Assembly (NCBI GenBank): GCA_025558095.1
Contig: JAIVFI010000020.1
Coordinates: forward strand, 248,001-312,000
Direction: 5' to 3'
DNA from: Hyaloraphidium curvatum SAG 235-1
Taxonomy: Eukaryota > Fungi > Monoblepharomycota
Length of the DNA: 64,000 bases
Below, piece after piece: positions 1,352-61,043 of the stretch; positions within the stretch are counted from its first letter, which is position 1; each line of letters begins with the position of its first letter. Both the position numbers and the translations under genes were made by a program. The notes under the pieces are model-generated. The model searched no databases. It saw only the letters and a program-made list of their open reading frames with translations, and was not told the origin of the DNA.

Positions 1352-4300
1352 TTCCGCTTCGGGCCACGCGCATTCTGATGAAATGCCCACAGTGGACCAG
1401 TTCCTCGCCGCCAAGCTGTGCCGCGCGTGGCTCCGCGCCCCGTGGGACGACGCCGCGCAAGCCTGGATGTCTGTCCCTGCGGCGGCGCAGAGCCGCTCGA
1501 CCCGGCGGCGGCGGCGCAGGCAGTTCGGACTCTTCCTCCGCCCCGTACTCGCGCTTGCCACAAGGACGGCTTGGCTCGCCAACGAGGCAACGCTGAGCAT
1601 AGATACGCAGACTGCGGAGCTCAACGGCGAGAATCCTGTGCTTGGAACGGACGACCTCCCGCCGCTGTGCCGCAAGACCCGCGAGGTCATCTTGGCCGAA
1701 ATTGCATTCCTGAGCGCTCCCAGCAGGTAGGCCACGGTGCTGTTGGCCCTTGGGGCGTCGGTCCTCATTCGTACCGTTTCGAAAGGCAAGTGCCCGGCTC
1801 CGAGGGCACGGCCAAGGGCAAGGGCAAGGCCAAGGCACCTCCTGGAGGAGCGGACGGAGATGGGTTGGAGCCGCCGCCGAGCAAGGTCGGCAAGGTGTGC
1901 GGAAGATGCGGGGGGGCCGACCATGAACGGGCCAGCAACAGGCTGTGTCCGTATCACAAGCCCACCATCAAGGCGACGGCGAAGAAGGACGTCGAGCAGG
2001 TTATTAGGGCCGTCGACCATCAAGCTCCCCCTTAAGGGCCTCTGCACCTCGTCACCCGCGTCTTTCGCATCTGTCCACGACACGCTCGCGCTGGCCTACA
2101 CGCCCATGGCAATCGCCGCCGCGCTGCTGCTCAACGAGGGCGTGGCGGCCTGGGTCACGGAGAACCGCGTGCTGCCACAGCTCAACCAGTCGCTGTTGCG
2201 CCGGGTCTTTTTCCTTTGCGCCTCCGGGGAGCTACGCATTCAGGCGAGCGATTCCTTACAGGGACAGGAAGAGTTCTTGCGGTCCTTAGAGCGCATCTGG
2301 CTTGGAGACGGTGGCACACCGGGTCTTCGGGCGAGCTACCCGGCGCGCTTTGCGGCGTTTCGGGCTCCAGGGGCTCGGGGGAGCGCGTCGCCGAACCGCA
2401 TGATCGACCAGTACTTCAGCTCCGAGTTCGACAACATCTACAACGCGACGTTCAAGGACTATCAAGTCAACATCGAGGTGCACCTGGAAAGCGCGGCGAA
2501 CCGCAACTTCAAGAAGCTCGCCGAGCTCCGGTTCTACAAGCTTCCCTGGTGGAACGCGGTGGTGGACGGCGACCCGGAGAAGGAGCTCCCTGCCGAGCGC
2601 AAGTCGGCGATCTTTGCAAGCCTCCTTTCCGCCAGCAAGAGCCGACGCCGGCCCCTCAAAATCTTCAGCCGCACCGCCGCGGCCGGGGATCATTACCTGA
2701 CGGAGCAGGACGTGGAGCTGGCTGTTGCCGCTGGCCAGTCTCTGACATACGGCTGGAAGACGCCGTCGATGCAGCATCACCGAAGCGCTGTGCTGGGGCC
2801 ACACTTTCTGGAGGCGCTGCTGCGTGATGTCCGCGCCGGGCGCGACCTCCACGTTTCCATGCGAGGGGAATTTGCGTCGTGGTTCGAGGAGGAGTTCGAG
2901 ACGATTATGGAGACCGTGGTGCTCAACAAGGTGGCGAGGGCGCAGCTGGCCAAAGACCTCGTGGCCCGCATCACGAGCACCGGTGCGCACAAGTTCAGCG
3001 CGCGGCACATAGCGTTGGGGGAAGGTCCGGCCGCCATCCCCTGGGATACATTGCAGGCCGCTGCGAACACCGGAAATGGCCTTCTCCTGGACCGTCGGGC
3101 GGGCAAGACGGCGGTCGTGCGGGACAGGCTGCAGCACGCCACGATTGTCCAGCTCGTTACCTTCCTCCAGGAGGCATGGGGACATCAAAACGATATCGAA
3201 AGGAACGGGATGCAAGGCGGCGTGAAGGACTGGAACACGCGGCTACGGTTTCTGCACAGGTCGAACTGCCTGATCGGTGCTCTCTATGACATTACCGTGC
3301 CTGCCGGGCCCTTTGATCCGCAGTGGCAGCCGCCCTTGCCGCCCACCTCGGCCCTCCTGCCCTACTTCAACTACCAGACCAAGCACGTCAAGGTCGCTAC
3401 ATTCGATGCGCTGCTGGAGGTTGTGAAACGCCACAAGCGCATGTTTCCCGCCGAGCACGCAGCCGTCATGGACGACCACTTTCCGTTCGGGGAAGAGTTT
3501 GACGAGACCAACGAGTACCACCGGCGGCGTCTGTGGGCTGCGGTCTACGATACGGACAGCCTGCTGCAACGCGAGGTCCGAGGCGGCTTCAGGGACAACT
3601 ACGTTGGGGACAAGACGCGCGCCTTCGCCTTCGCCGTGTCCTCCAATGGTGTCGAGGCTTCGGTGCTTTTCAACAAGGCGGTGCCTAACGACGACTTCGA
3701 GCCGGAGGGCGAGGCTCGCGAGGCCGGTGGTGCGGATGACGAGGCCAGGATCGTCCGCGAGGCCGCCGCCGCTGCCTTCCACGCGGGCCTACGCAGGGGC
3801 ATGGAGCGGGCGGTGCAGTTCGAGGACCAGGCGAGGCGCGGCGAGATCAAGCTGCACGTCCAGGGTCTGGACCCCGGACCGGGCGGCTTCACGCTGGCTC
3901 GGCGCACGGAGGATGGCGAGGCTCGGAGCAAGGTCTTCTTCTACTCGTTCAAGCAGTATCACTACGAGTCTGGCGTGACAAAGCGCCAACGGCAGCAGGA
4001 AGCCCTAACAAAAGCAATGCACGTGACCACGGCCGCCGGGCCGGTCTCTATCCAGACTATCATCAACGCCATCCCCGCGAGCACGATCACCGCCGTCGAC
4101 GCCATCCACCGCCGCAACACGTACATCCTCACGCATCTCGACACGCTGGTCGGCTTCTACAGCGAGTTCCGGGACGAGCGTTTCCAGAACTACCGCGGCA
4201 AACAGATCGCCCTCGAACGCATGGCGCAGGAGCTGCTCGCGATGGAGCATGAAAGCAAGACCGGTTCGCCGAAAACCGCGGAGACCAAGGCGGCGCGGCG

Positions 4301-5083
4301 GAACCGGAAGGGCTGGCGCCGGTGGTTCAGGAGCAAGAGGAGGAAGCGCGCCGGCGGAAATCGTCTGCCGGAGCGCTACGTGATCGTTTGGGGTAACGCC
4401 AAGGTCGGCAGCATGTCCTGGATCAAGAAGCAGATGCGCGGCCCGTTCAAGAAGCTCATCGCGCTGCTGGAGGCACGGCCCGACGTCGTGGTCGTCATGG
4501 AGGACGAGTACGGCACGAGCAAGTGCTGCCACTCGTTCGACCAGTGGAGCCTGGACACGCGGAGGTGCCGGCAGATGCTCAAGGAGCTGGAGCCGACGTA
4601 CCGGCCTCCGGTGGTGGCGGAAGGGGAGCAGGCGGAGGAGCGCAAGTGGCACGTACCGATGGTCATCCCGACCAAAAAACCCTGGTATGTGCGCTGGTGA
4701 GTGTGCTGGCTTCTGCTGCTTTTCTCGATCTGACGCCCGCAAAGGTGCTTCAACCCCGCCTGCCCCGTCGACCACATCCACCGCGACGTGAACGCGTCGC
4801 TGAACATGCTCCGCCTTTACGAGTGGCGCCTCTGGCAGTGGCGCACGGCGCCGGGGATCGACGTGGAACAGACGGGGCGGCCCCCCGGCCTGAGGCGCTT
4901 GTCGTAGAACTGCACCCATCATCTGGGTAACCCTCAACTCTTCAGAACTCCCATCGACCGACGGCGGCTCGCGAGGGCTGGCATACCCTAGGACCGAGCT
5001 CGGTGAACGATGGGATCTCATTGGCCGCTTACAGTCGGGATTCTCGAGGATCTCAGCATTCCGATTTGTAGTTGGAAGCGGAA
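1352..5083 (+). mobile_element. Non-autonomous Fanzor1-carrying DNA transposon (element A) with inverted termini and TA target-site duplication
   Basis: CTATTCCGCTTC (1349-1360) is the exact reverse complement of GAAGCGGAATAG (5075-5086). TA occurs at 1350-1351 and 5084-5085, and the reconstructed empty site is gtCTAGga. The interior holds only the Fanzor gene and a structured 3' region. Confidence 0.8.
1383..4907 (+). CDS. Fanzor1 RNA-guided endonuclease (TnpB/Cas12-like RuvC), about 1,140 aa, with N-terminal CCHC zinc knuckle
   Basis: RuvC-I VQGLDPG (D 3870-3872), RuvC-II VVVMEDEYGTSKCC (E 4506-4508) and RuvC-III HRDVNASLNM (D 4785-4787, reached after intron 4697-4744). Also SSNGVEASVLF, YHYESG, VGFYS, IVWGN and a terminal GRPP. 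Intron 1727-1785 leads to CGRCGGADHERASNRLCP. There is a frame discontinuity near 2000. Confidence 0.9.
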
Positions 5084-43539: not shown

Positions 43540-44992
43540 CTATCGCACCAGCACCTTCATCCCCGCGTGCCCGTCGTCCTGGTGAAGGATCTGTCCGTTG
43601 CCCTCCACAAAATTGCTCCTCTCCCGGGTCGGGCTCATTCGCTTCATCTCGCTGACGGCGGGCGACATGTACCCGTTCGGCGCCGAGACGACATTGACTG
43701 GGCTCTCCTTGGAGTGCATGACTAGCAACCGCTGGGACGCCTGCTTGCTTTGCAGGTCCACGTAGCTGTAGTACGCTCCGCCGCAAAGCGTCAGCACAAT
43801 CCCGACCCCGTTTGTGCCGGTGATGTGGAGCGAGAAAACGGTGACGGCAATGAGGATCGAAAGAACCTGCTTTACGTTCCCTGTGCGACAAAGGACTGTC
43901 AAACGCTGACTCTTGCGGAACGAACGGCACCCCTTACCCGCAACGCCCATCGTAAGGGCACTGGTCTTCTTGTTGGCGGTGAAGCTGACCAAGTTCATGC
44001 TGAACGCGAGGATCCCGTTTCCCCCCAGCACCAAGCAAGCATAGGGGGTCCACTCGAAGTTTGCGGACATCTTGGCCAGCTCCCCGGTGTACCAAGAAGC
44101 AACAAAGGTCTGAATGCAGCCCAACGGAGCCATCCGCATGAGCAGGTCCATTGGGTGGAGCTTCAGCTCCCCGACCTGGACCTGGTTGGTCACGACGCCC
44201 TTGAGCGCCGAAAGGACGGTGCCGAGCACCGTCAAAAAGAAACCCATCATGGTGAAGTAGTAGTCGCCGTAGGTGGCGATCGCGACACCAAGAATGGTCT
44301 GTGGGCGAGACTGGACTTAGAAGGACACACGGAGCAAACAGAATGTCGACCCACGGGAAGAAGAGACACCAAAACCCTCTGCGATGGGTACTTGCTCAAC
44401 CACAAAGCGTTGATTCCAAGCACCCAAACGGGGGTCGTGGCCCGGATAACTGGGTAGGCAGGCCGCGGGATCAGTCGCCATCCCCGGGCCGGAAAGCAGG
44501 CCGATACCCACTTTGGTGAAACGGCACCGTCACCAGGTTCAAAGAAACGTTGCTCATAGCAATGTTGATAGTATAGAGGAAGCTGAATGCCAGCATGATG
44601 TAGTTTCCTCTCGGGCTAAGCTTCGCCGGCTTGAATGCCCCAGTGCTGAAGAGGATGTAGCACCCAACCGCCGAAAACAGATTATGGATCCCAGTAAGTG
44701 CCCAAGGGTATTTGAAGTTGAGGAATTGCATCGCCGCCTGGGTTCCGAATGGGACCGGCGTTGAGCGGGGACGAGTCACGGGCAAACGGCGCCACGCACC
44801 TTGTTGTAGATTGTGAGGATCAGGCCATTGAAAAAGTACGCAGCAAGCCAGAGGTAGCTGGCAGAGTGAGAGAGTTCGCCGGCGCGGGCAGGTGTCAGGA
44901 CAGCAAGGCGGGACAGGCAGAGACAAGCACCTTGTGTCCACACTGTACCGGCTCCCGCCGACACGGCCGTCCACCGCCGCGAAGACCGCCAT
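43540..44992 (-). CDS. Triose-phosphate/nucleotide-sugar transporter family protein (SLC35E-like); multi-exon
   Basis: LTIYNK, FKYPWALTGIH, SNVSLNLVTVPFHQ and KKTSALTMGVAG|NVKQV. Confidence 0.85.
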
Positions 44993-45615
44993 GACCTCGG
45001 AAGAGGTAGGCGGCGGTCGCGCGGTGCAATCGCCGGGATTAGGGGCACAAATCGGTTGTCCCAACAAGCAGCTTCGAGTGGCAGGTGGGCTGGTCACCGC
45101 CGTCAGCCCAAATGCGGACGCCCGCCCTTCACACAGGATTGATCTCCAAAAAGCCGGACTGAGACTGTAAGCCACTATGAATTGTTATGAATTGTTCGAT
45201 CTGAACGATCTGTTGGTACCCGAGGAGAAGCTCGTTGGTGGGGTGACTCGTACTGATTGTCCACTAGCAAGCAACCAGCAACCACGATCTAATCTAGTCA
45301 GCCGCTAGAGTATCCAACCTAACACGCCGTAGCACCATGCAGGATGAATAGGTCGCGCGAGTTCGCCACTTCCATCCAAGGTCCACTTGCCGGCCAACCC
45401 CGTGTTCCCGCGTCGACTGCAACCATGTTAAAGCAGTCCATGTCCGAGCTCTGAATTGCAAAGGGCAGACACGTCACTTCCTGCCTGCCAATGGTACCGA
45501 GAGAGAGAGAGCTCAATCCGTCAGACACATCTTTGGCTGAATGAAGTAGTCCACGCGAGATCCCCCAACTCGAAACGCTCCACAGCACGTCCGAAGTCAA
45601 AACAATCAGTCCTCA

Positions 45616-45982: not shown

Positions 45983-46025
45983 TTTGGTTGATGTTGGGCG
46001 ATTGGGCGAGGACGCGCCTCCCTGT
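45983..46025 (+). repeat. Left copy of the ~43-bp direct repeat bounding the Fanzor B island
   Basis: TTTGGTTGATGTT-GGGCGATTGGGCGAGGACGCGCCTCCCTGT. Confidence 0.9.
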
Positions 46026-46643
46026 CGATGTTCGCGGCGCAGAGGAGGAAACTCGCGTCTCCCAGCATCGTCCGCAAATGAGGGCCTTGACCATCAACCA
46101 TTCCGACAAGTTGACCCCCCGAAAAGGGCGGAATAGGTAGTCTTTTGCGATGGCAAGGACGCCCCCGGCCCGAATGGACGTTGATCTATTGGTCCGTCCG
46201 CGGTAGGAAGCCAGGACCGTGGGCAGAGGCATCAACGATAGATCCGCTCCCACTGTCAATAGATCCGAGATCTTCATGAAGAGAGAATCACAAGAAGAGC
46301 ATCAGATCTCCCTCTTTGCTGGGTGATTGATCCGCCTGCTTCCGGGAGACAAGTGAGCCTCGCTTCGGCATCCGGTGGCAAGCCGGGTCGCGATTCCGCT
46401 TCATCACCCCCTCGTCGCACGCGCGCATCACGGGGCGCTCGTGCGTCGGGCCGTGCGGCTCGCATTCTACGGAATCGCCTTTGTGCGCGCTGGGCCGCGG
46501 AATCTTGGCCGGGCCCTCGCGGGAGGCCCCGGAAGCTTTGGACGCGACATTTCGAAACCGGCCCGATACGTGGCCCCGGGGCTGCACCGGCGCCGGAACG
46601 CGCGTGATTTGCCTCTTTCCTCGTCCATTTGCTGCTCTTGAAC

Positions 46644-49600
46644 ATGCCCTTTGATGCGCGGAACCCGGACCTGCGATGGGAGGGCCACCGGGCCGGGCGA
46701 TTCGCCAACATCATCAGCAGGACCACGTTCCAAACCGGACTGGAGCAACAGGCAGTAGTCTTTGTCATTGAATGCCTGCTCAAGTGCGTTTCCATCGCCC
46801 GGGACCGCGCCGTGCCGCATATGGCTTTCAAGGGAGCCTACGAGGCGGACCGTATCCTCGCGCACCCCGACGTTGACATGATGAGATATGATCACCAACT
46901 CGGCATCCTCCGGCCGACGGGTACGTTATCTGAATGCAGCTCATCGTCCCAGACCGCGCTGACGACGCCTCATTCGCAGATTTCAGCCCGCTCACCGGCG
47001 ACGTGGAGTACGCCGACAACTACATCGCCACATCGGAATTTCAGATGTTCGGCGACTACGACCTTGCCTCGTGGGATCGCGACGGCCAACTCCTGTCGGG
47101 ACACTGTGAGAGCCGCTTTGGTCTTGGCTTCAGGTCGCTTGCTGATGACCGATCACGCGTCAGTTCGGGACCCGCTCGAGATCCCTCCCCACTTGTGGGA
47201 GATGATGAGGATAACGGACAACGATCAGGACTTTGCAAAGGCGCTGAGGGTCGAATGGCCGGGGCGGCCATGTAGGTTTCGGTTGCTTTCACGGCTGACG
47301 ACAGTTGACATTGCGCTGCAGGGGTCTCGGAAAGCAACAAGCCGCCGTCGCCCTTCGAGACGTCGTACCGAAACTTCCGGGAGCGGTTCATCGTCCCGGC
47401 AATGCACGAAGACTACGGTCAGGGTCTCAGATTGCCGCTTGCTTCCGACATGCTGACGTCTTCCCCCCGACAGATTGGCCCGACGGAGATCGCGCACCGC
47501 GCTTCGACGTCCACGCTACAGAAGTGGACCCCTCGCCGGCACACCTTCGCTGCATTCCATACCTGATGGGTCACGAGATTGTGCAAGACATCGGTGCAGA
47601 ACTGGAGACCAGTCCGTCCATCATGCGTCTTGCACTCTTCCTCAGACTGATTCCTCCTGTAGGCTCTCGAGCACTTTTCGCCGAAAACTTCATCGACTAC
47701 CTGGATCGATTTTTCAAATCGCTCGTGGACGCCTGTCCGCACACGCAGAACCTCCACCCGGATGACCGCAAGCGGCTTCGTAAGCACTTCATTCTTGATT
47801 GCGTCTGGTTGTCTGACGGGCTCCGCATCTCTCTCGCAGTCAAGCGTATGCGGCTCCTGGTGTCGCCACGCGTGGTCAAGAGTCGCATGCTCTTCTTCAT
47901 GATGTTATTCTCGTCGGCATTCCTGTTCGAGGGGATCCACTTCCCTTCCGACGTCGCGCCGTACGTCAACGCCCGGCGCGCAATCGCAGGCATGATTTTG
48001 TGGGCGCTTGAGCGTTGCTTCGATGACTACGTCGTCCCTGATTTCGCTCCATCAGACGTGCTCGGCGATGGCTTCAGACCATCGCCGATTCCATTCGCGA
48101 CCTCGCTCCTTGGGATCCGGAGGTCGCTCCGACGGAGGAGAACCTTTCGTCGCGCGTTCATGCCGGCTTTTGGGGATACGTATTCGAGAATGACATGCTC
48201 GCCGCATCGCGCGCGCGTGGCTTCGTCCGGTGAGCTGCATCGTGGTCATCTCGTATCCACTTTCTCAATTCTTGCAGGTTCATGTCCTTCGCCGTGCCTC
48301 CACCGGTCAAGACGCACCCCAAGGCCAAGGTCGACCCGCCAATGAAGCTCTACTCGTCGCACTGGAACTTCACCGTCGGTGAGCTGTGATGTGCGACAGG
48401 CCGATGGATCTGTCTCTCACGCCCGTTCGTCACCAGATTCTATCGACATTTCGGGAAATACGGCGGCTCGAATCCTGGCCTTGCTCCGTATTGCCGTGAG
48501 CTGCCTTCTGCCGATGCCTTCGGCAGTCACACATCATCGCGTGCCCAGGACATCCCATTCTTGCCAGCAGGCTGGCAGCAGCCGGACCTGCCACCTTTCA
48601 TACATCGAACCAAAGCTCGTACGCAAACCAGTGGCTTTTTCATCACCGCCAAAGGCACTCCTGCCAAAGGCGACCAGCTGGTCGGCATGCAGCTTCGCAG
48701 CCAGGCGGAACTCTTTGAGCTCGAGCGCAACAAGGCGCTCGTCATGAACAAGCCTGCTTTCGCCGACCGTCGCCGGATCTTCTCCAAGGCTATCACCATG
48801 TACATCAACAAGGGCAACGAGTGGCGCGACGGTATGTCGTTTGTGAGGTTCGGCAGTTGCGGGTGATGACGACGGTGCGGCAGGAAAACCGAGCGAAGGA
48901 CCGATCCCCGTCAACCACTACCTCATAAACACCAACTCGACCGATGCGTTCCACTTGTATCGGCTCAACACAGGCGGCCTCTTGAAGTCCGACCCGTTCA
49001 AGAAGCGTGAGTTCCGTGGCTGCTTCGCGCCCAGCTCTTCTAATTCCCCGTCACGTCCCAGGGCGCCACACCACGTGGCAGGAATTGAACGGCCCGCGGT
49101 TCCGTCGCCCGCCGCGGCACTACACGCCGCCGGATCCGGCGCTTGTTGACGGGCAGTTCAACGACTTCACTCTGCAGCCAGTCACGCCACACGAGCAGTG
49201 GTACCAGCCGGGGCAGACCAATCTTGGGGCCGATCTCGGTGAGAGTTTGACGCCGTTGCACCACCGCAGACCGCTGGCTGATCGCGCTCGACTTGCAGGA
49301 TACGCGTTCGGTGCTGTTCTCGTCAACCTCAACCTCGTCCTGGACCCGCCGGACCCCGTCGGCTTCTACGACGTCGCTGGTCGGGCGAACGCGAAGGAAA
49401 CGCGACGCGAGAACGTGCGGAAGCTCCGCGGCCGGACGATTCAGTGGGTCTTCGTCGACCTTCTCTTCGGACATCTGAGTTGATTACTTTGTACAGGAAA
49501 GTCCAAGGTGGCCAACGGTTCAACGCCCTCATGCGAAGGCACAAGACCGACGAGATCAAGGGCAAGTAGCGGACCGTGGCCTGATTCTCTTTCTCCTCAC

Positions 49601-51262
49601 ACCCCCCAACAGATGCCGAGGACTTCCTCGAGGGGCGAGTCGTCGAGTTTGAGCACGGCGCGTCGCTGGAGTCCATGGGCTACTGGCTCGCCAAGCGCCA
49701 CTTTGTCGCACCCACGTGAGTCGCCTATCGCTCACGCGAGTCGAAGCGTTGACTTTGTTTCGGCAGCCTCCGCGAATACTACATGTCCCGGCGCCACCGC
49801 GCCATGCTCTTTGAGCGTCGCACAACAAGGCAGGCCACCAACTACGACCTGCAGCACCACCTGCTCAAGACCGGGGTTCGTCACCTCTCTTCCCCGCACA
49901 CCAATGCGACTAAAGTCTGCTTCTCGCCTTTCACAGATGCCATTCACCCTCCGCCAGCCTCGGCCGGGCAACGCGCGCGAGGAGGCGCAGGGATACCGCT
50001 ACCTACCTTTTGCCTGGCCGTTTGCGCGCCGCCAGGCGCCCAACGGCAAGCGGCACCACACCGCCAACCGCAAGACAAAGCGAGCGGATCGAAAGACCTG
50101 GAACGACCCCTCGATCGTCGACAGCCGGTTTCGCGCTCCGGAGTTCCAGCGCCCGCGCGGGTTTCCGAAACCGATCCGCATCGCCGTCGGCAAGGGCGGC
50201 ACGAAGCCGGACAAGCGCTACCCGCCCATCGGCGTGCGGGTGAGTTTGAAGCTCGCTAGTACTCTGCAGCATCTGAGCGTCGCACCGACAGGCAATCCTT
50301 CGCACGGCCATGTTCGAGGGTGTTCACCTCGATGGCATGACCGAGACCGGGACCACCGGCACGTGCATGCCGGCCGTCGTCGCAGACGGAGGCACCGGCC
50401 ACAAGATGAAGCGAGCAGGAGTTTCAGCACGAGCAGTCGATGGAGGCGCTCGTGGTTCCTGCATCCCACGCTCGCCCGGCGCTACCCGGATGTGCGCTTC
50501 GTCCCCGATGCCATGGTGGTGGACGACGGCTCCTGCCTCACCGGTGCCGCGGCCATGGCGCAGGGAGACGTCATGCTGGCGCTGGTGCGCCGCGTGGCAT
50601 CGCCCGAAATCGCCGACCTGACGGCACGCTGTCTTCAATGAAGGATGTGTCCTTCACCGCATTGCTTTGGCCCATCTGCAGTTGTTGTGGAATACGCACC
50701 GACGTCGTCGGTACGGCAACATCACCATCACCATTCACGACTCCGATCACCAGTGAGTGATCGCCAGACGCCTTCCGCCGACTCTTGCGCTGACCATCTG
50801 ACGGTGTGGCCAGGACGAGACGCCGGAACGACGGAACCAAGCACCATAGCAAGCGGTTCTGTGTCACGGAAAGGGTTCCTGTCTCGCAGTGCACGACTCG
50901 CGATGAGGAAGGTGAGCTACGGCGCTCTGGATCTTCTTTTGCGCCGACCCAATGATCTCCTTCCCGCTTTAGAGGTCAGCACGTGGCGGCTCTTGGTCTG
51001 CGGGGGGCCGCAGGCCCAGCAGCACGACCACGGCGGTCACCGGCACCTGATCCTTCCCCGAGCCCAAGGGAGGGACGAGACGGTCTACAACCGCGACGTG
51101 CCCTCCGCGGGGCTCATGATCTACAACAACCTCTACGCCACCGAGAACCGCGGCGCCCGCCCGCCGTACAACCGGAACAAGTGGTATCGCGGCCCCGTGC
51201 CGCAGCGGATCTGGGAGGGCCACCCGCCCAACCAGGAGCTCGACGCCGCGGGGATTGGGTGA
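46644..51262 (+). CDS. Divergent intron-rich Fanzor1-like nuclease (roughly 1,100 aa, about 18 introns); probably disrupted near 50450
   Basis: Phase-consistent splicing gives NSTDAFHL, RuvC-I NLGADLG (D 49232), GGQRFN...TLREYYMSRRHRAMLF...RQ, IRIAVGKGG, RuvC-II HLDGMTETGTTGTC (E 50343), and WRLLVC...RuvC-III YNRDVPSAGLM (D 51095)...ARPP. Confidence 0.78.
50450..50638 (+). pseudogene. Intronless fragment resembling the DJ-1/PfpI domain of bacterial GlxA (AraC-family) regulators
   Basis: SWFLHPTLARRYPDVRFVPDAMVVDDGSCLTGAAAMAQGDVMLALVRRVASPEIADLTARCL. Confidence 0.65.
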
Positions 51263-51600
51263 GTCGCTCGATCCCCCGGCGTCGGGCCGGGGGCGTCGAT
51301 ACCCTTATACCCGCGATACCCCTCGGACTCTCCTCTATACCTCCGGCCCGCGATGAGCTGGTCGTTCGATACCCCTGGTCGTCCGATACCCTCCTCTCCT
51401 TATTGATAGAGTAGACGGCTCTCGGGAGCCGGTGCTAACCCGTGGATGGGCTGACCATAGCGATCTGCGGGCGGGGCACCATCATCTAGTTCACGCGCGA
51501 GATGCAGACGGCGCCGCATACAACGGCGTGTGATCAACGTGTCATCGCATGAAGTGTAGCAATACATTTGGTTGATGTTACTTGGGCGATTGGGCGAGGA
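51263..51600 (+). ncRNA. Putative omegaRNA region of Fanzor B
   Basis: Hairpins at 51273-51293, 51416-51431, 51431-51480, 51512-51528 and 51552-51569 (GCAA tetraloop), directly downstream of the RuvC-III exon. Confidence 0.5.
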
Positions 51601-51613
51601 CGCGCCTCCCTGT
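51567..51613 (+). repeat. Right copy of the direct repeat (contains an extra ACTT)
   Basis: TTTGGTTGATGTT-ACTT-GGGCGATTGGGCGAGGACGCGCCTCCCTGT. Confidence 0.9.
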
Positions 51614-51634: not shown

Positions 51635-53103
51635 ATGAGCTGGAAGGGCTTCAAAAAGGCGGTCGAGCGGCTGCCGCACCAGGTCATGGGCGGCGGCGCG
51701 ACGACGGTGGACGAGGACTTCAACGAGCTCGAGTCGGAGCTCAAGCACCTCGAGACGTGCGCGACGAAGCTGCGGAACGACGCGGAGAAGTTCAAGGAGG
51801 CCGTGCATGCGAGCCTGGACCACCAGGAGAAGATGGCCCAGGTCCTCTCCGAGGTGCGGCCGACCGGGGGAAGGCGCGGCGCGGCCCTGAGCACCCCGCG
51901 CAGGCCTACCAACCGATACCATCGCGCGTGCTGTCGCCCACGGGTCAGCAGCGCGAGCTGACCCAGGCTTCGGAGGAGTCGCAGAGGACGGTGCAGGAGT
52001 ACGCGGATTCAATGCGGCGGGCGAAGGAGGAGCTTATACCCGAGCTGGTCTGTGCCCGAGCGCAGTGGACCGCCCTGTTCCCTGCTTTATCCATTCGGCC
52101 GTCTCCAGGATCTCATCGACCGGCGTATCGTGCAGCCGACCAAGGATTTCCTTGAGATCATCGGGAACATCAAGAAACTGATCGTGAAGCGCGGCCACAA
52201 GCTGCTGGACTACGACCGGCACCGCCTGGCGCTCCAAAAGGCCAAGGAGCGCAAGGACCGACAGGCCGCGGACGAGCGCCGGATCGCCGAGCTCGAGCAG
52301 AAGTTCGAGCAGGCCACGCGCGAGTACACCACCATCAACAACGCCCTCCTCTCCGAGCTTCCCACCTTCCTCCAGTACCGCGTGCACTTTGTGGACCCCT
52401 GCTTCCAGACCCTCTTTGCCGTGCAGCTCCGCGTGCACCGCACCATGGCCGACACCTTCTACCGGCTGGCCCAGAACACGTGCGACCTGACCACTTCGCC
52501 GCTGGAGGGCTTCGAGCGGCGCAAGGGCGAAGGGGAGCAGCTCCTCGGGGAGCTCACCATCCTCAAGGGGTCCTGGAAGACGGCCGCGGGCGGGCCGACG
52601 CCGCAAGGGTCCACGGACGACCTGGCGTACGGGAGTCCCGTGCGGAGCAACGCGCGGGGGTCGCAGGACGGGCTGGAGGAGGGGCAGCAGGCGCCGCCGC
52701 CGTACGAGTCGGCGAAGCTGTTCCCGGCGCCGCAGCCGGCGGCCGCCGGGCCCGCCGGGCCGAGGAAACAGGCGCCGCCGCCACCTGCGGCGAAGAAGAA
52801 GCCCATGGTGCAGGCGCTCTACGACTTCGAGGCGCAGCAGCAAGGGGATCTGAGCTTCCGGAAGGTGGGGCGAGAAGGCGGCGGTGTGGTTCAGCGGCTC
52901 ACATTTCTTCCGCTTGCCTTTCCCAGGGCGACCAAATCGAGATTTTGGAGCGCACGGCGGACGTGAACGACTGGTGGACAGGGCGGATCGGGAACCGCGA
53001 GGGCCAGTTCCCTGGAAACGTAGGTCACCGCTCCTGCTTGCCAAGCTCCTCTCTCTGACCCGGCCCCGGTTCGCAAACTCGCCAGTACGTTGCAGAATTA
53101 TAG
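51635..53103 (+). CDS. RVS167: BAR + SH3 amphiphysin
   Basis: MSWKGFKKAVERLPHQ, IVKRGHKLLDYDR; SH3 ALYDFEAQQQGDLSF...WWTGRIGNREGQFPGNYV. Confidence 0.9.
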
Positions 53104-59698: not shown

Positions 59699-61043
59699 TC
59701 ACATCGAGCGAACAAACTGGCACGCCGAGCACATCCTGAAGCGGTCGTCGGGGTTGTGTGCGAGACAGTTTGGGCAATACCATCCCGTGGCCAAACTTGG
59801 TGCCGGTTTGTTCGCAGGAGTTGCAGCAAGCCCGGGCCTCAGCGAGTCGCAGGCATCGCACCTCGTCTTGGTGGCCGGATTCCGCAACGTGCACGCCGCG
59901 CAGCTCCATCCGGTTTGCTGCCCGGATTCCGGCCGCGGCTTTGGCGGGGGCCGATACACCGCGCCTTCATCGTCGCTGTCCAAGCTGATGACCTCGACCG
60001 CCCCTTTTGGCTGAAGCCTGTCCTTCGCGCGCGCCGGCTCCTCCTTCTCCTTCCCGCCCTGGTCTCCGTCCCGTTCGTCCGCAGCCGGCGATGGATTCCT
60101 TGCTGGCGCTGGCAACGATGCCGACGATGCGCTTGCCTGCACGGGCTCGCCGGCCCCATCATTCCCGCTGTGCTCGTGCTCGTCACTCCCGCACCAAATA
60201 CGATCCTGCGCCGCACGCTTCTCCGCAGCCATGGCAGCGAGCTGTCCCGGGTTGTAGACCCTCTCCAGAGATTTGAGGTCGCTGGAGCCGCCAAGCTTCT
60301 GCCCCGACTGCGCCGTCCCGATCCAGCCGTTGTACCTCAAGCGTTTCTGGGCAGCTTCCACCGCTTTCTGCCTCGCCAGATGGGGCGGCGGATCGTGAGA
60401 AACGCCTTCCCCGACCCTCTTCCCCGGTGCGTCGAAGCCGTCGCCCTTGAATCCGGAAGCGAGGAGGCCGTCGTACTCCTTGTTCAGCTCGTCCAACAGC
60501 TTGTAGAACTGGGCATCGTGCGGACCGCGAACGATGTGCACAAGCTCATGCAACATAGTGCCAAGGCAATGGTCAAAGTCGTAGAACCTTGTTCGACCCC
60601 GCATGAATCCTCGAGAACAGAGAATTGACGGAGCGGGGGCACTCACGACTTCTCGTCCCCGCCGTGCCGCAGCCGGAGCAGAATCTGCTGGCCTCGGTTC
60701 ACGTTGAGCCCGTGTAAGGAGTGATTGGCCGGGTAGAACTCCTTGAGGGCTCCGACGAACCAGCCGCGCTTCTTCATAATCGGCCGGACCTGGGTCGCCC
60801 GTCACCAGTGAACCATGAGCCGTCCGCGCCATCGACAGTCTCAGGCCCACCTGCGATGCAATTTTGCGGAGTATCGCTGCTGCCTCCTCGTCATTGTGCT
60901 TCCCCAGCGTCGAGAAACTGCCAATGATGTCCTTGTACCTGTCCCGACATCAGATGCCTGTGTCGGCCCATTCGCGAAGGAGATCCCCACTTGTTCTCCC
61001 CTGGAGGCGCCCGCTGGGCAGAGTCCTTCCCGCCCTTGGCCAT
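59699..61043 (-). CDS. WSS1: WLM metalloprotease with C-terminal RanBP2-type zinc fingers
   Basis: PIMKKRGWFVGALKEFYP, GLNVNRG, TMLHELVHIVRGPHD, WSCAACTLRN and WYCPNCLAHN. Confidence 0.88.

Follow-up and report, generated by a model that had tools for sequence, protein, structure and literature searches.

We analysed a window of 64,000 nucleotides from the genome of Hyaloraphidium curvatum (contig C20, positions 248001–312000; genome 31.9 Mb, ∼62% GC) and found that window positions 46023–51566 are one copy of a low-copy repeated unit of ∼5.2 kb carrying a single gene. The window unit is a disabled copy of an element whose gene, which is intact on contig C19, most likely encodes a very divergent member of the TnpB/Fanzor family or an offshoot of it. 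The C19 gene would yield a protein of 1,090 amino acids, a probable relative of the RNA-guided RuvC nucleases, with an active site composed of the Asp in LGADLG, a Gly in place of Glu in IRIAVG, an alternative Glu in E.GT[ST]..C and the Asp in YNRDV. A Cys/His-rich segment of ∼100 residues would take the place of the CxxC zinc ribbon, and the protein would have an extra N-terminal region of ∼300 residues. By analogy with Fanzor and TnpB elements, the 300 nt past the stop codon, ending at the fixed right end of the unit, may supply a guide-RNA scaffold. An insertion in exon 18 brings in a stop codon before the Cys/His segment and RuvC-III, leaving the window copy dead or truncated.

The full gene structure is predicted to comprise 20 exons and 19 introns (Table 1). 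Reading frames and stop codons were checked by script, and homology tests used single exons or the database protein P0001 (KAI9024605.1), a 782-residue ‘hypothetical protein’ of NCBI that models the spliced product of a distant paralog (contig C12). The initial annotation of this DNA had listed 18 introns in consistent phase, and all 18 hold: they are 48–61 nt long with GT..AG ends, save that the one at 49562 opens with GC, and splicing at them keeps the exons in frame. What it had overlooked is a nineteenth, intron 5, which is in frame and stop-free in the window copy. This intron was recognised because a 4-nt difference in C19 creates a GTGAGT donor and breaks the frame unless the intron is spliced; the C19 equivalent is 55 nt long with GTGAGT..TGTAG ends (L004:2713–2767), and its splicing is required for frame. 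The spliced window product nevertheless contains an internal stop, also missed, and ∼100 of its codons, those at 50412–50711, look like out-of-frame sequence. On the sequence evidence the model as first drawn is largely correct and well supported, backed by the indel pattern, the dN/dS ratio and the paralog introns described below. Intron density had been put forward as a sharp contrast with another ORF of the window, element A. As a mark that sets the gene apart from Fanzors it is not supported: ∼5.8 introns per kb of coding sequence falls within the range of published Fanzors, which extends to ∼9.6 per kb (PMC10530073).

A whole-genome search with the largest exon recovered the copy on C19, which is 88–91% identical in nucleotide sequence across window positions 46023–51566. 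With its 19 introns removed, each bounded by GT/GC..AG, the C19 gene (L004:1745–6078) is an uninterrupted open reading frame (ORF) of 1090 codons. When the two copies are aligned globally, the small indels within the gene, 17 in number, sit without exception in predicted introns. The exons make up ∼78% of the gene length, yet they contain only two indel events: the 300-nt window insertion and the 4-nt difference that creates the C19 GTGAGT donor. The gene is under purifying selection: substitutions between the copies fall 56/37/195 on codon positions 1/2/3, the synonymous divergence (dS) is 0.29, and the ratio of non-synonymous to synonymous divergence (dN/dS) is 0.13.

By its reading frame, the copy in the window is dead or truncated, and the intact gene is that of C19. 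Nothing else in the genome matches the 300-nt insertion in DNA or in protein, and all four other copies of the family lack it. Its in-frame TGA falls between catalytic motifs two and three and cuts the window ORF to 1017 codons. The stop thus precedes both the Cys/His segment and the RuvC-III candidate. The ends of the insertion are not GT/GC..AG, and no pair of splice sites with a good donor, branch point and acceptor would remove it in frame. It had been claimed that all three catalytic residues are kept. Candidate motifs for the D/E/D set are indeed present, but the frame ends before the third, and the kept residues do not make the window copy functional because the ORF is broken between motifs two and three.

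A search of 1.84 billion representative proteins with a profile made from the C-terminal exon yielded P0001 and P0002; it found the family and low-complexity matches only, with no relatives outside the family. P0002 is a 205-residue unspliced ORF at 50645–51262. As it is the only NCBI product found for the window copy, ‘hidden from annotation’ is a fair description, and the proposal of a separate, heavily intronised gene that annotation had missed (save for this 3′ ORF) proved real. A protein homolog search with P0001 returned P0001 alone, and since the databases searched contain no relatives of the family, no deeper alignment is possible.

The family comprises five full copies in two subfamilies: subfamily 1 (the window and C19) and subfamily 2 (C12, C41 and a second C20 locus). 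Among themselves the three subfamily 2 copies share ∼92% DNA identity, and each of their exons is colinear with its counterpart in subfamily 1. The paralog proteins are 782-residue ‘hypothetical proteins’ lacking a Pfam domain. Mapped onto the C12 DNA, P0001 has 13 introns of roughly 55–65 nt. An exon-by-exon comparison with the window gene gave 34% protein identity across 677 residues, and 13 of the 14 window introns in the range shared with P0001 (downstream of exon 5) coincide in position, so that the junctions are borne out by a homolog. For exon 1, the distant paralogs offer a weak match that is colinear, and no domain was detected in the product of exons 1–5. The C12 (∼184383–193056) and second C20 (∼585392–594417) copies have 8.67 kb in common, compared with 5.17 kb for the C41 copy; the extra left segment of ∼3.5 kb occurs at these two genome sites (C12 and second C20) only, and its ORFs have no Pfam match.

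The peptide landmarks of the initial annotation are found in the spliced product in the order given. At the level of motifs, G[AN]D[LF]G, [ED]x[GR]T[ST]xxC and [YF]xRD[VT] are present in all five copies in the order D...E...D, with Asp as the acid of the second motif in subfamily 2. Fanzors have a rearranged active site in which Gly or Pro takes the position of the canonical RuvC-II Glu and an alternative Glu follows further downstream (PMC10530073). As a candidate site, the IRIAVG strand together with the Glu downstream of it fits this arrangement. Several stretches resemble Fanzor sequences directly: YNRDVPSAGLMIYNNLYATENRGARP aligns ungapped with WNRDINSARNMLYLFWHQLLFDGARP of L008, a PF07282-positive Fanzor, with 11/26 identities and the same spacing, while short colinear matches pair FYDVAGRANAKETRRENVRKLRGRTI with YYHEAGYT--EQTRKLNVRKKRDRII of a Fanzor, just past RuvC-I, and MTETGTTGTC with the Fanzor sequence IHEHGSSQKC.

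A link to Fanzors was also suggested by a feature search of the ESM-Atlas, whose search space is 7.7 million clusters. With P0001 as query, 26 of the 30 best clusters belonged to Cas12f1-like_TNB (PF07282) or DUF8286 and the other four had no common family (score 0.96, 181 of 256 features shared). These are giant-virus and fungal ‘transposase’ clusters, corresponding to Fanzors. Residues 320–782 of P0001 returned the same families and a C2c1 (Cas12b) RuvC-like cluster, with a score of 0.94; a shuffled protein reaches 0.95 about once per 100 tries. The matched families have a composition very unlike that of the GC-rich P0001. A marginal signal came from hhalign, in which a family alignment with each window exon as a separate row was compared with a six-sequence alignment of RuvC regions from same-genome Fanzors (L010 on contig C14, the proteins P0006–P0008, L008 and element A). 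The local score was 23.2 (P 0.045), equalled by 2 of 120 column shuffles. The extended alignment pairs the Tyr-rich helix (FY), RuvC-III and the following G.RP/GARP, and misses RuvC-I and the E..TS..C block.

A number of results weigh against a Fanzor assignment. Searches of Pfam, NCBIfam and PHROGs with the exons and P0001 gave no match at E values up to 10, and PDB sequence searches with single exons, an exon profile (A1) and P0001 gave chance matches only. A genome-wide PF07282 scan marks 17 places, none of them among the five copies. The family was negative in hhalign against A4, a thin profile of a canonical same-genome Fanzor (the L010 ORF with P0006–P0008), yet A4 does detect element A with 94.6% probability (E 7e-8). 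Because A4 finds element A and not this family, the family is far more divergent than the same-genome Fanzors are from one another. Pairwise low-gap alignments to Fanzors were not significant, bar a z of 2.35 against one of them. No CxxC...CxxC zinc ribbon lies between the RuvC-II and RuvC-III candidates, where there are no CxxC pairs at all. The AlphaFold2 single-sequence model of P0001 was unusable (pLDDT 33.4, pTM 0.22). RNAalifold found no convincing covariation in the 3′ tail of the unit (covariation term -0.32). Finally, the ESM-Atlas recognition value of 2152 lies below the tool's mark of 2300, making this weaker evidence by the tool's own rating, and for that reason we hold the resemblance to be a strong lead rather than proof.

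In place of the ribbon, the ∼100 residues between E..TS..C and RD hold a GHxH motif and four conserved Cys. In the L008 Fanzor, PF07282 covers E..TS..C to RD.NAA within 47 residues, and it cannot align to the family because a gap of ∼100 residues separates E..TS..C from RD. A tblastn at low stringency against seven further Fanzor loci yielded mainly out-of-frame noise. The protein homolog search returned three relatives for the L010 Fanzor and none for the L008 Fanzor ORF. An alignment of P0001 with the window exon fragments, made with MAFFT, left the fragments scattered and was unusable as fold input.

Taken together, Fanzor ancestry is the best explanation and, in our estimate, a likely one, its grounds being the resemblance in features, the motifs kept in the family and profile statistics of marginal strength. 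The identification as Fanzor therefore survives in part: the feature search, the marginal hhalign result and the conserved motifs speak for it, while no HMM, profile or PDB match and no CxxC zinc ribbon were found. We call the gene Fanzor-like and do not file it as Fanzor1, because the HMM match and the zinc ribbon, two defining features, failed. The protein would probably adopt a RuvC fold and may act as a nuclease.

The boundaries of the unit are sharp. The window and C19 copies are homologous from ∼46023 to exactly 51566 (...GAAGTGTAGCAATACA), with unrelated flanks. The right end of subfamily 2 is ...GAAGTGCAGTAATTGCA, and the right terminus is thus conserved across subfamilies with 34% protein identity. 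The right-end motif was found at two further loci, on C16 and C23, as solo fragments of subfamily 2 that are 95–98% identical and terminate in ...GCAATTGCA; upstream of both there is no coding homology, and their flanks are unrelated. The copies have a fixed right end and a variable left extent, from 132 nt to 8.7 kb. No transposase-like ORF lies within the unit. A direct repeat of 43/47 nt brackets the window copy. It occurs at these two places only in the whole genome and greatly exceeds target-site duplications of the usual length; around the other four copies, no repeat of at least 8 nt is present beyond chance. A perfect 16-nt inverted repeat (GACGCCCCCGGCCCGA / TCGGGCCGGGGGCGTC), with one arm in the conserved 5′ block (46158–46173) and the other in the 3′ tail (51282–51297), has identical arms in C19 and no counterpart in subfamily 2. 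Within the 5′ non-coding part, the block 46115–46410 is 80–90% identical to C19 and holds several short ATAGATCC-like repeats. Subterminal repeats can be seen near both ends, with four ATAGATCC/TTGATCC-like repeats in 46180–46340 and five of CGATACCC in 51296–51400.

The 3′ tail, comprising the 300 nt past the stop codon, is conserved. Two long blocks in it are 97–98% identical between the window and C19, and tail blocks, including a GGCTC/GAGCC hairpin, are recognisable in subfamily 2. Exon 20 diverges from C19 by 3.4%, compared with ∼9% for the other exons. Given the identity of the tail, and the 3.4% of exon 20 against a dS of 0.29, a constrained non-coding function probably overlaps the 3′ end of the gene. 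The tail has a fold z-score of -1.7 and no Rfam match. The stop codon of both subfamilies lies within a donor-like GG|GTGAGT or GG|GTAGGG (window 51259–51264; L007:5113–5120), a YAG lies 7–8 nt short of the unit end (window 51555–51566; L007:5402–5417), and GTGAY lies 22–27 nt upstream of this YAG. The tail may be a terminal intron of ∼297 nt, and we regard it as a candidate guide-RNA scaffold and/or terminal intron.

These features can be drawn into a more specific proposal, to which we assign only a slight chance: a transposase-less, Fanzor-derived element that copies from its fixed right end, with the tail serving as both terminal intron and guide-RNA scaffold. Splicing, guide production and right-end-anchored copying would then, at the same slight chance, be tied together through the tail intron, and such copying would, with equal reserve, have left as by-products the solo right ends, the left extents that vary between copies and the 43/47-nt duplication.

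Other explanations for the gene must be weighed. It may be a lineage-specific duplicated Hyaloraphidium gene of another fold, whose Fanzor-like motifs are a chance resemblance picked by eye. We take this to be unlikely, though not negligibly so. In its favour, every alignment-based test was negative or marginal, the zinc ribbon is missing and the search of 1.84 billion proteins yielded nothing beyond this genome. Against it, the independent feature search twice gave, among 7.7 million clusters, the very family put forward in advance. The motifs remain colinear and conserved between the two subfamilies despite their 34% identity, and hhalign (P 0.045) aligned RuvC-III correctly. The unit also acts like a fixed-end element, in a genome rich in Fanzors.

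The gene could instead descend from a Fanzor and no longer be an RNA-guided nuclease, the family having been domesticated or repurposed by the host and maintained by purifying selection, its zinc ribbon exchanged for another segment and its genes unable to move by themselves. The sharp unit boundaries with unrelated flanks, and solo right ends with exactly the same terminus, are difficult to square with this, as are a non-coding tail more conserved than the coding sequence and candidate D/E/D residues kept in all copies. It gains from the dN/dS of 0.13 between copies at a dS of 0.29, from there being five full copies only, from the atypical Cys/His segment and from a unit without transposase. 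The sharing of 13 of 14 comparable intron positions (of 19) with a paralog only 34% identical further suggests long residence in the genome. On balance we consider domestication distinctly improbable. Less credible still is a window copy that remains functional, either through removal of the 300-nt segment from the transcript or through a role for the 1017-residue truncated protein. The insertion is exactly 300 nt and in phase 0, and the exons past it are still 93–97% identical to C19, which would suit such a copy. The insertion nevertheless carries an in-frame TGA, its ends and the lack of a good in-frame splice pair speak against removal, and 4/4 other copies lack it. A disabled copy of a divergent TnpB/Fanzor-type element, which would be mobile or have been so, thus remains our preferred reading.

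The genes adjoining the repeated unit are ordinary eukaryotic genes, and the unit occupies an intergenic or promoter region between a TPT-like ORF and a BAR-SH3 gene (Table 1). An ORF with a WLM metalloprotease and a RanBP2-type zinc finger, Wss1/SPRTN-like, lies at window 59702–60850 on the minus strand. Element A is a 987-residue ORF at window 1737–4700 (+) with no Pfam match and a GLDPG RuvC-I motif in its A4 match. It is an ordinary Fanzor1-type gene, unrelated at a detectable level to the 20-exon gene.

Table 1. Features of the repeated unit and its surroundings. Positions are those of the window unless a contig is named.
Feature	Position	Strand	Remarks
TPT-family transporter-like ORF	44471–45175	-	Upstream of the repeated unit
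Left direct repeat	45983–46025	+	43 nt, window copy only
5′ non-coding part of unit	46023–46643	+	Homologous to C19
Exons 1–5	46644–46920, 46980–47105, 47164–47271, 47322–47417, 47474–47611	+	N-terminal region
Intron 5	47612–47662	+	51 nt, in frame, stop-free; donor GTCCGT, acceptor TGTAG
Exons 6–12	47663–47999, 48056–48229, 48278–48378, 48437–48495, 48549–48831, 48884–49006, 49062–49238	+	
LGADLG, candidate RuvC-I	Asp codon 49232–49234	+	End of exon 12
Exons 13–17	49299–49443, 49497–49561, 49613–49715, 49767–49875, 49937–50239	+	
FYDVAG	49364–49381	+	
LREYY..RHR	From 49768	+	
IRIAVG, candidate canonical RuvC-II strand	50174–50191	+	Gly substitution
Exon 18, first part	50292–50411	+	Contains MTETGTTGTC
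MTETGTTGTC, candidate alternative RuvC-II Glu	Glu codon 50343–50345	+	
Insertion	50412–50711	+	300 nt, phase 0, within exon 18; in-frame TGA 50619–50621
Exon 18, second part; exon 19; exon 20	50712–50752; 50814–50911; 50973–51262	+	Stop 51260–51262
YNRDV, candidate RuvC-III	Asp codon 51095–51097	+	Exon 20
GARP	51152–51163	+	Exon 20
3′ non-coding tail	51263–51566	+	Conserved, reaches the fixed right end of the unit
Right direct repeat	51567–51613	+	47 nt, just upstream of the BAR-SH3 gene
BAR-SH3 (Rvs167/amphiphysin-like) gene	51641–53000	+	ATG ∼51641, ∼75 nt downstream of the unit end
Solo right end (L015)	C16:618401–618532	-	132 nt
Solo right end (L016)	C23:130618–130780	-	163 nt

If the Fanzor link is true, the family shows how far eukaryotic TnpB proteins can drift, to 1,090 residues, 19 introns, no zinc ribbon and invisibility to Pfam, and surveys of Fanzor diversity would undercount such lineages. 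A heavy intron load in Fanzors has already been published. The intron-like tail, together with a right end that is fixed and stands alone at two loci, bears on how transposase-less Fanzor elements spread.

Among known systems, the gene resembles Fanzor1 (SpuFz1, GtFz1 and PpFz1; PDB 8GKH and 9CER) in the order of its motifs, from GxDxG through a Tyr-rich helix with HRR-like basic residues, a Gly-substituted RuvC-II and E..TS..C to NRDV..A. It is also like Fanzor1 in its rearranged active-site layout, in having acquired introns, in being a multi-copy gene and in the conserved non-coding stretch that runs from the ORF to the element end. It differs from Fanzor1 in its length (1,090 residues compared with the usual 600–700), in having ∼100 Cys/His-rich residues instead of the CxxC zinc ribbon, in its lack of detectable HMM similarity, and in that no associated transposase or terminal inverted repeats were seen. 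The spacing is also wider, at ∼260 residues from D to E and ∼110 from E to D compared with 158 and 65 in SpuFz1. PpFz1, with a domain of ∼100 residues inserted in RuvC, is a precedent for large insertions in the nuclease lobe (PMC11423790).

The Fanzors of the same genome (element A; L010 on C14; L008 on C2) have similar NRD[VI].SA..M.Y...GARP, FY..AG and FYG..HRR-like motifs. These match each other or PF07282 by profile, whereas the present family matches neither, and they are long ORFs with few introns, compared with 19 here. With the TnpB elements of the IS200/IS605 type and their omega RNA, the unit shares a plan of one large RuvC-type gene followed by a conserved non-coding right end, and four of its five copies likewise have no target-site duplication. 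Unlike those elements, it is eukaryotic and intron-rich, no TnpA or subterminal hairpins have been demonstrated in it, and its left extent varies among copies while the right end is fixed.

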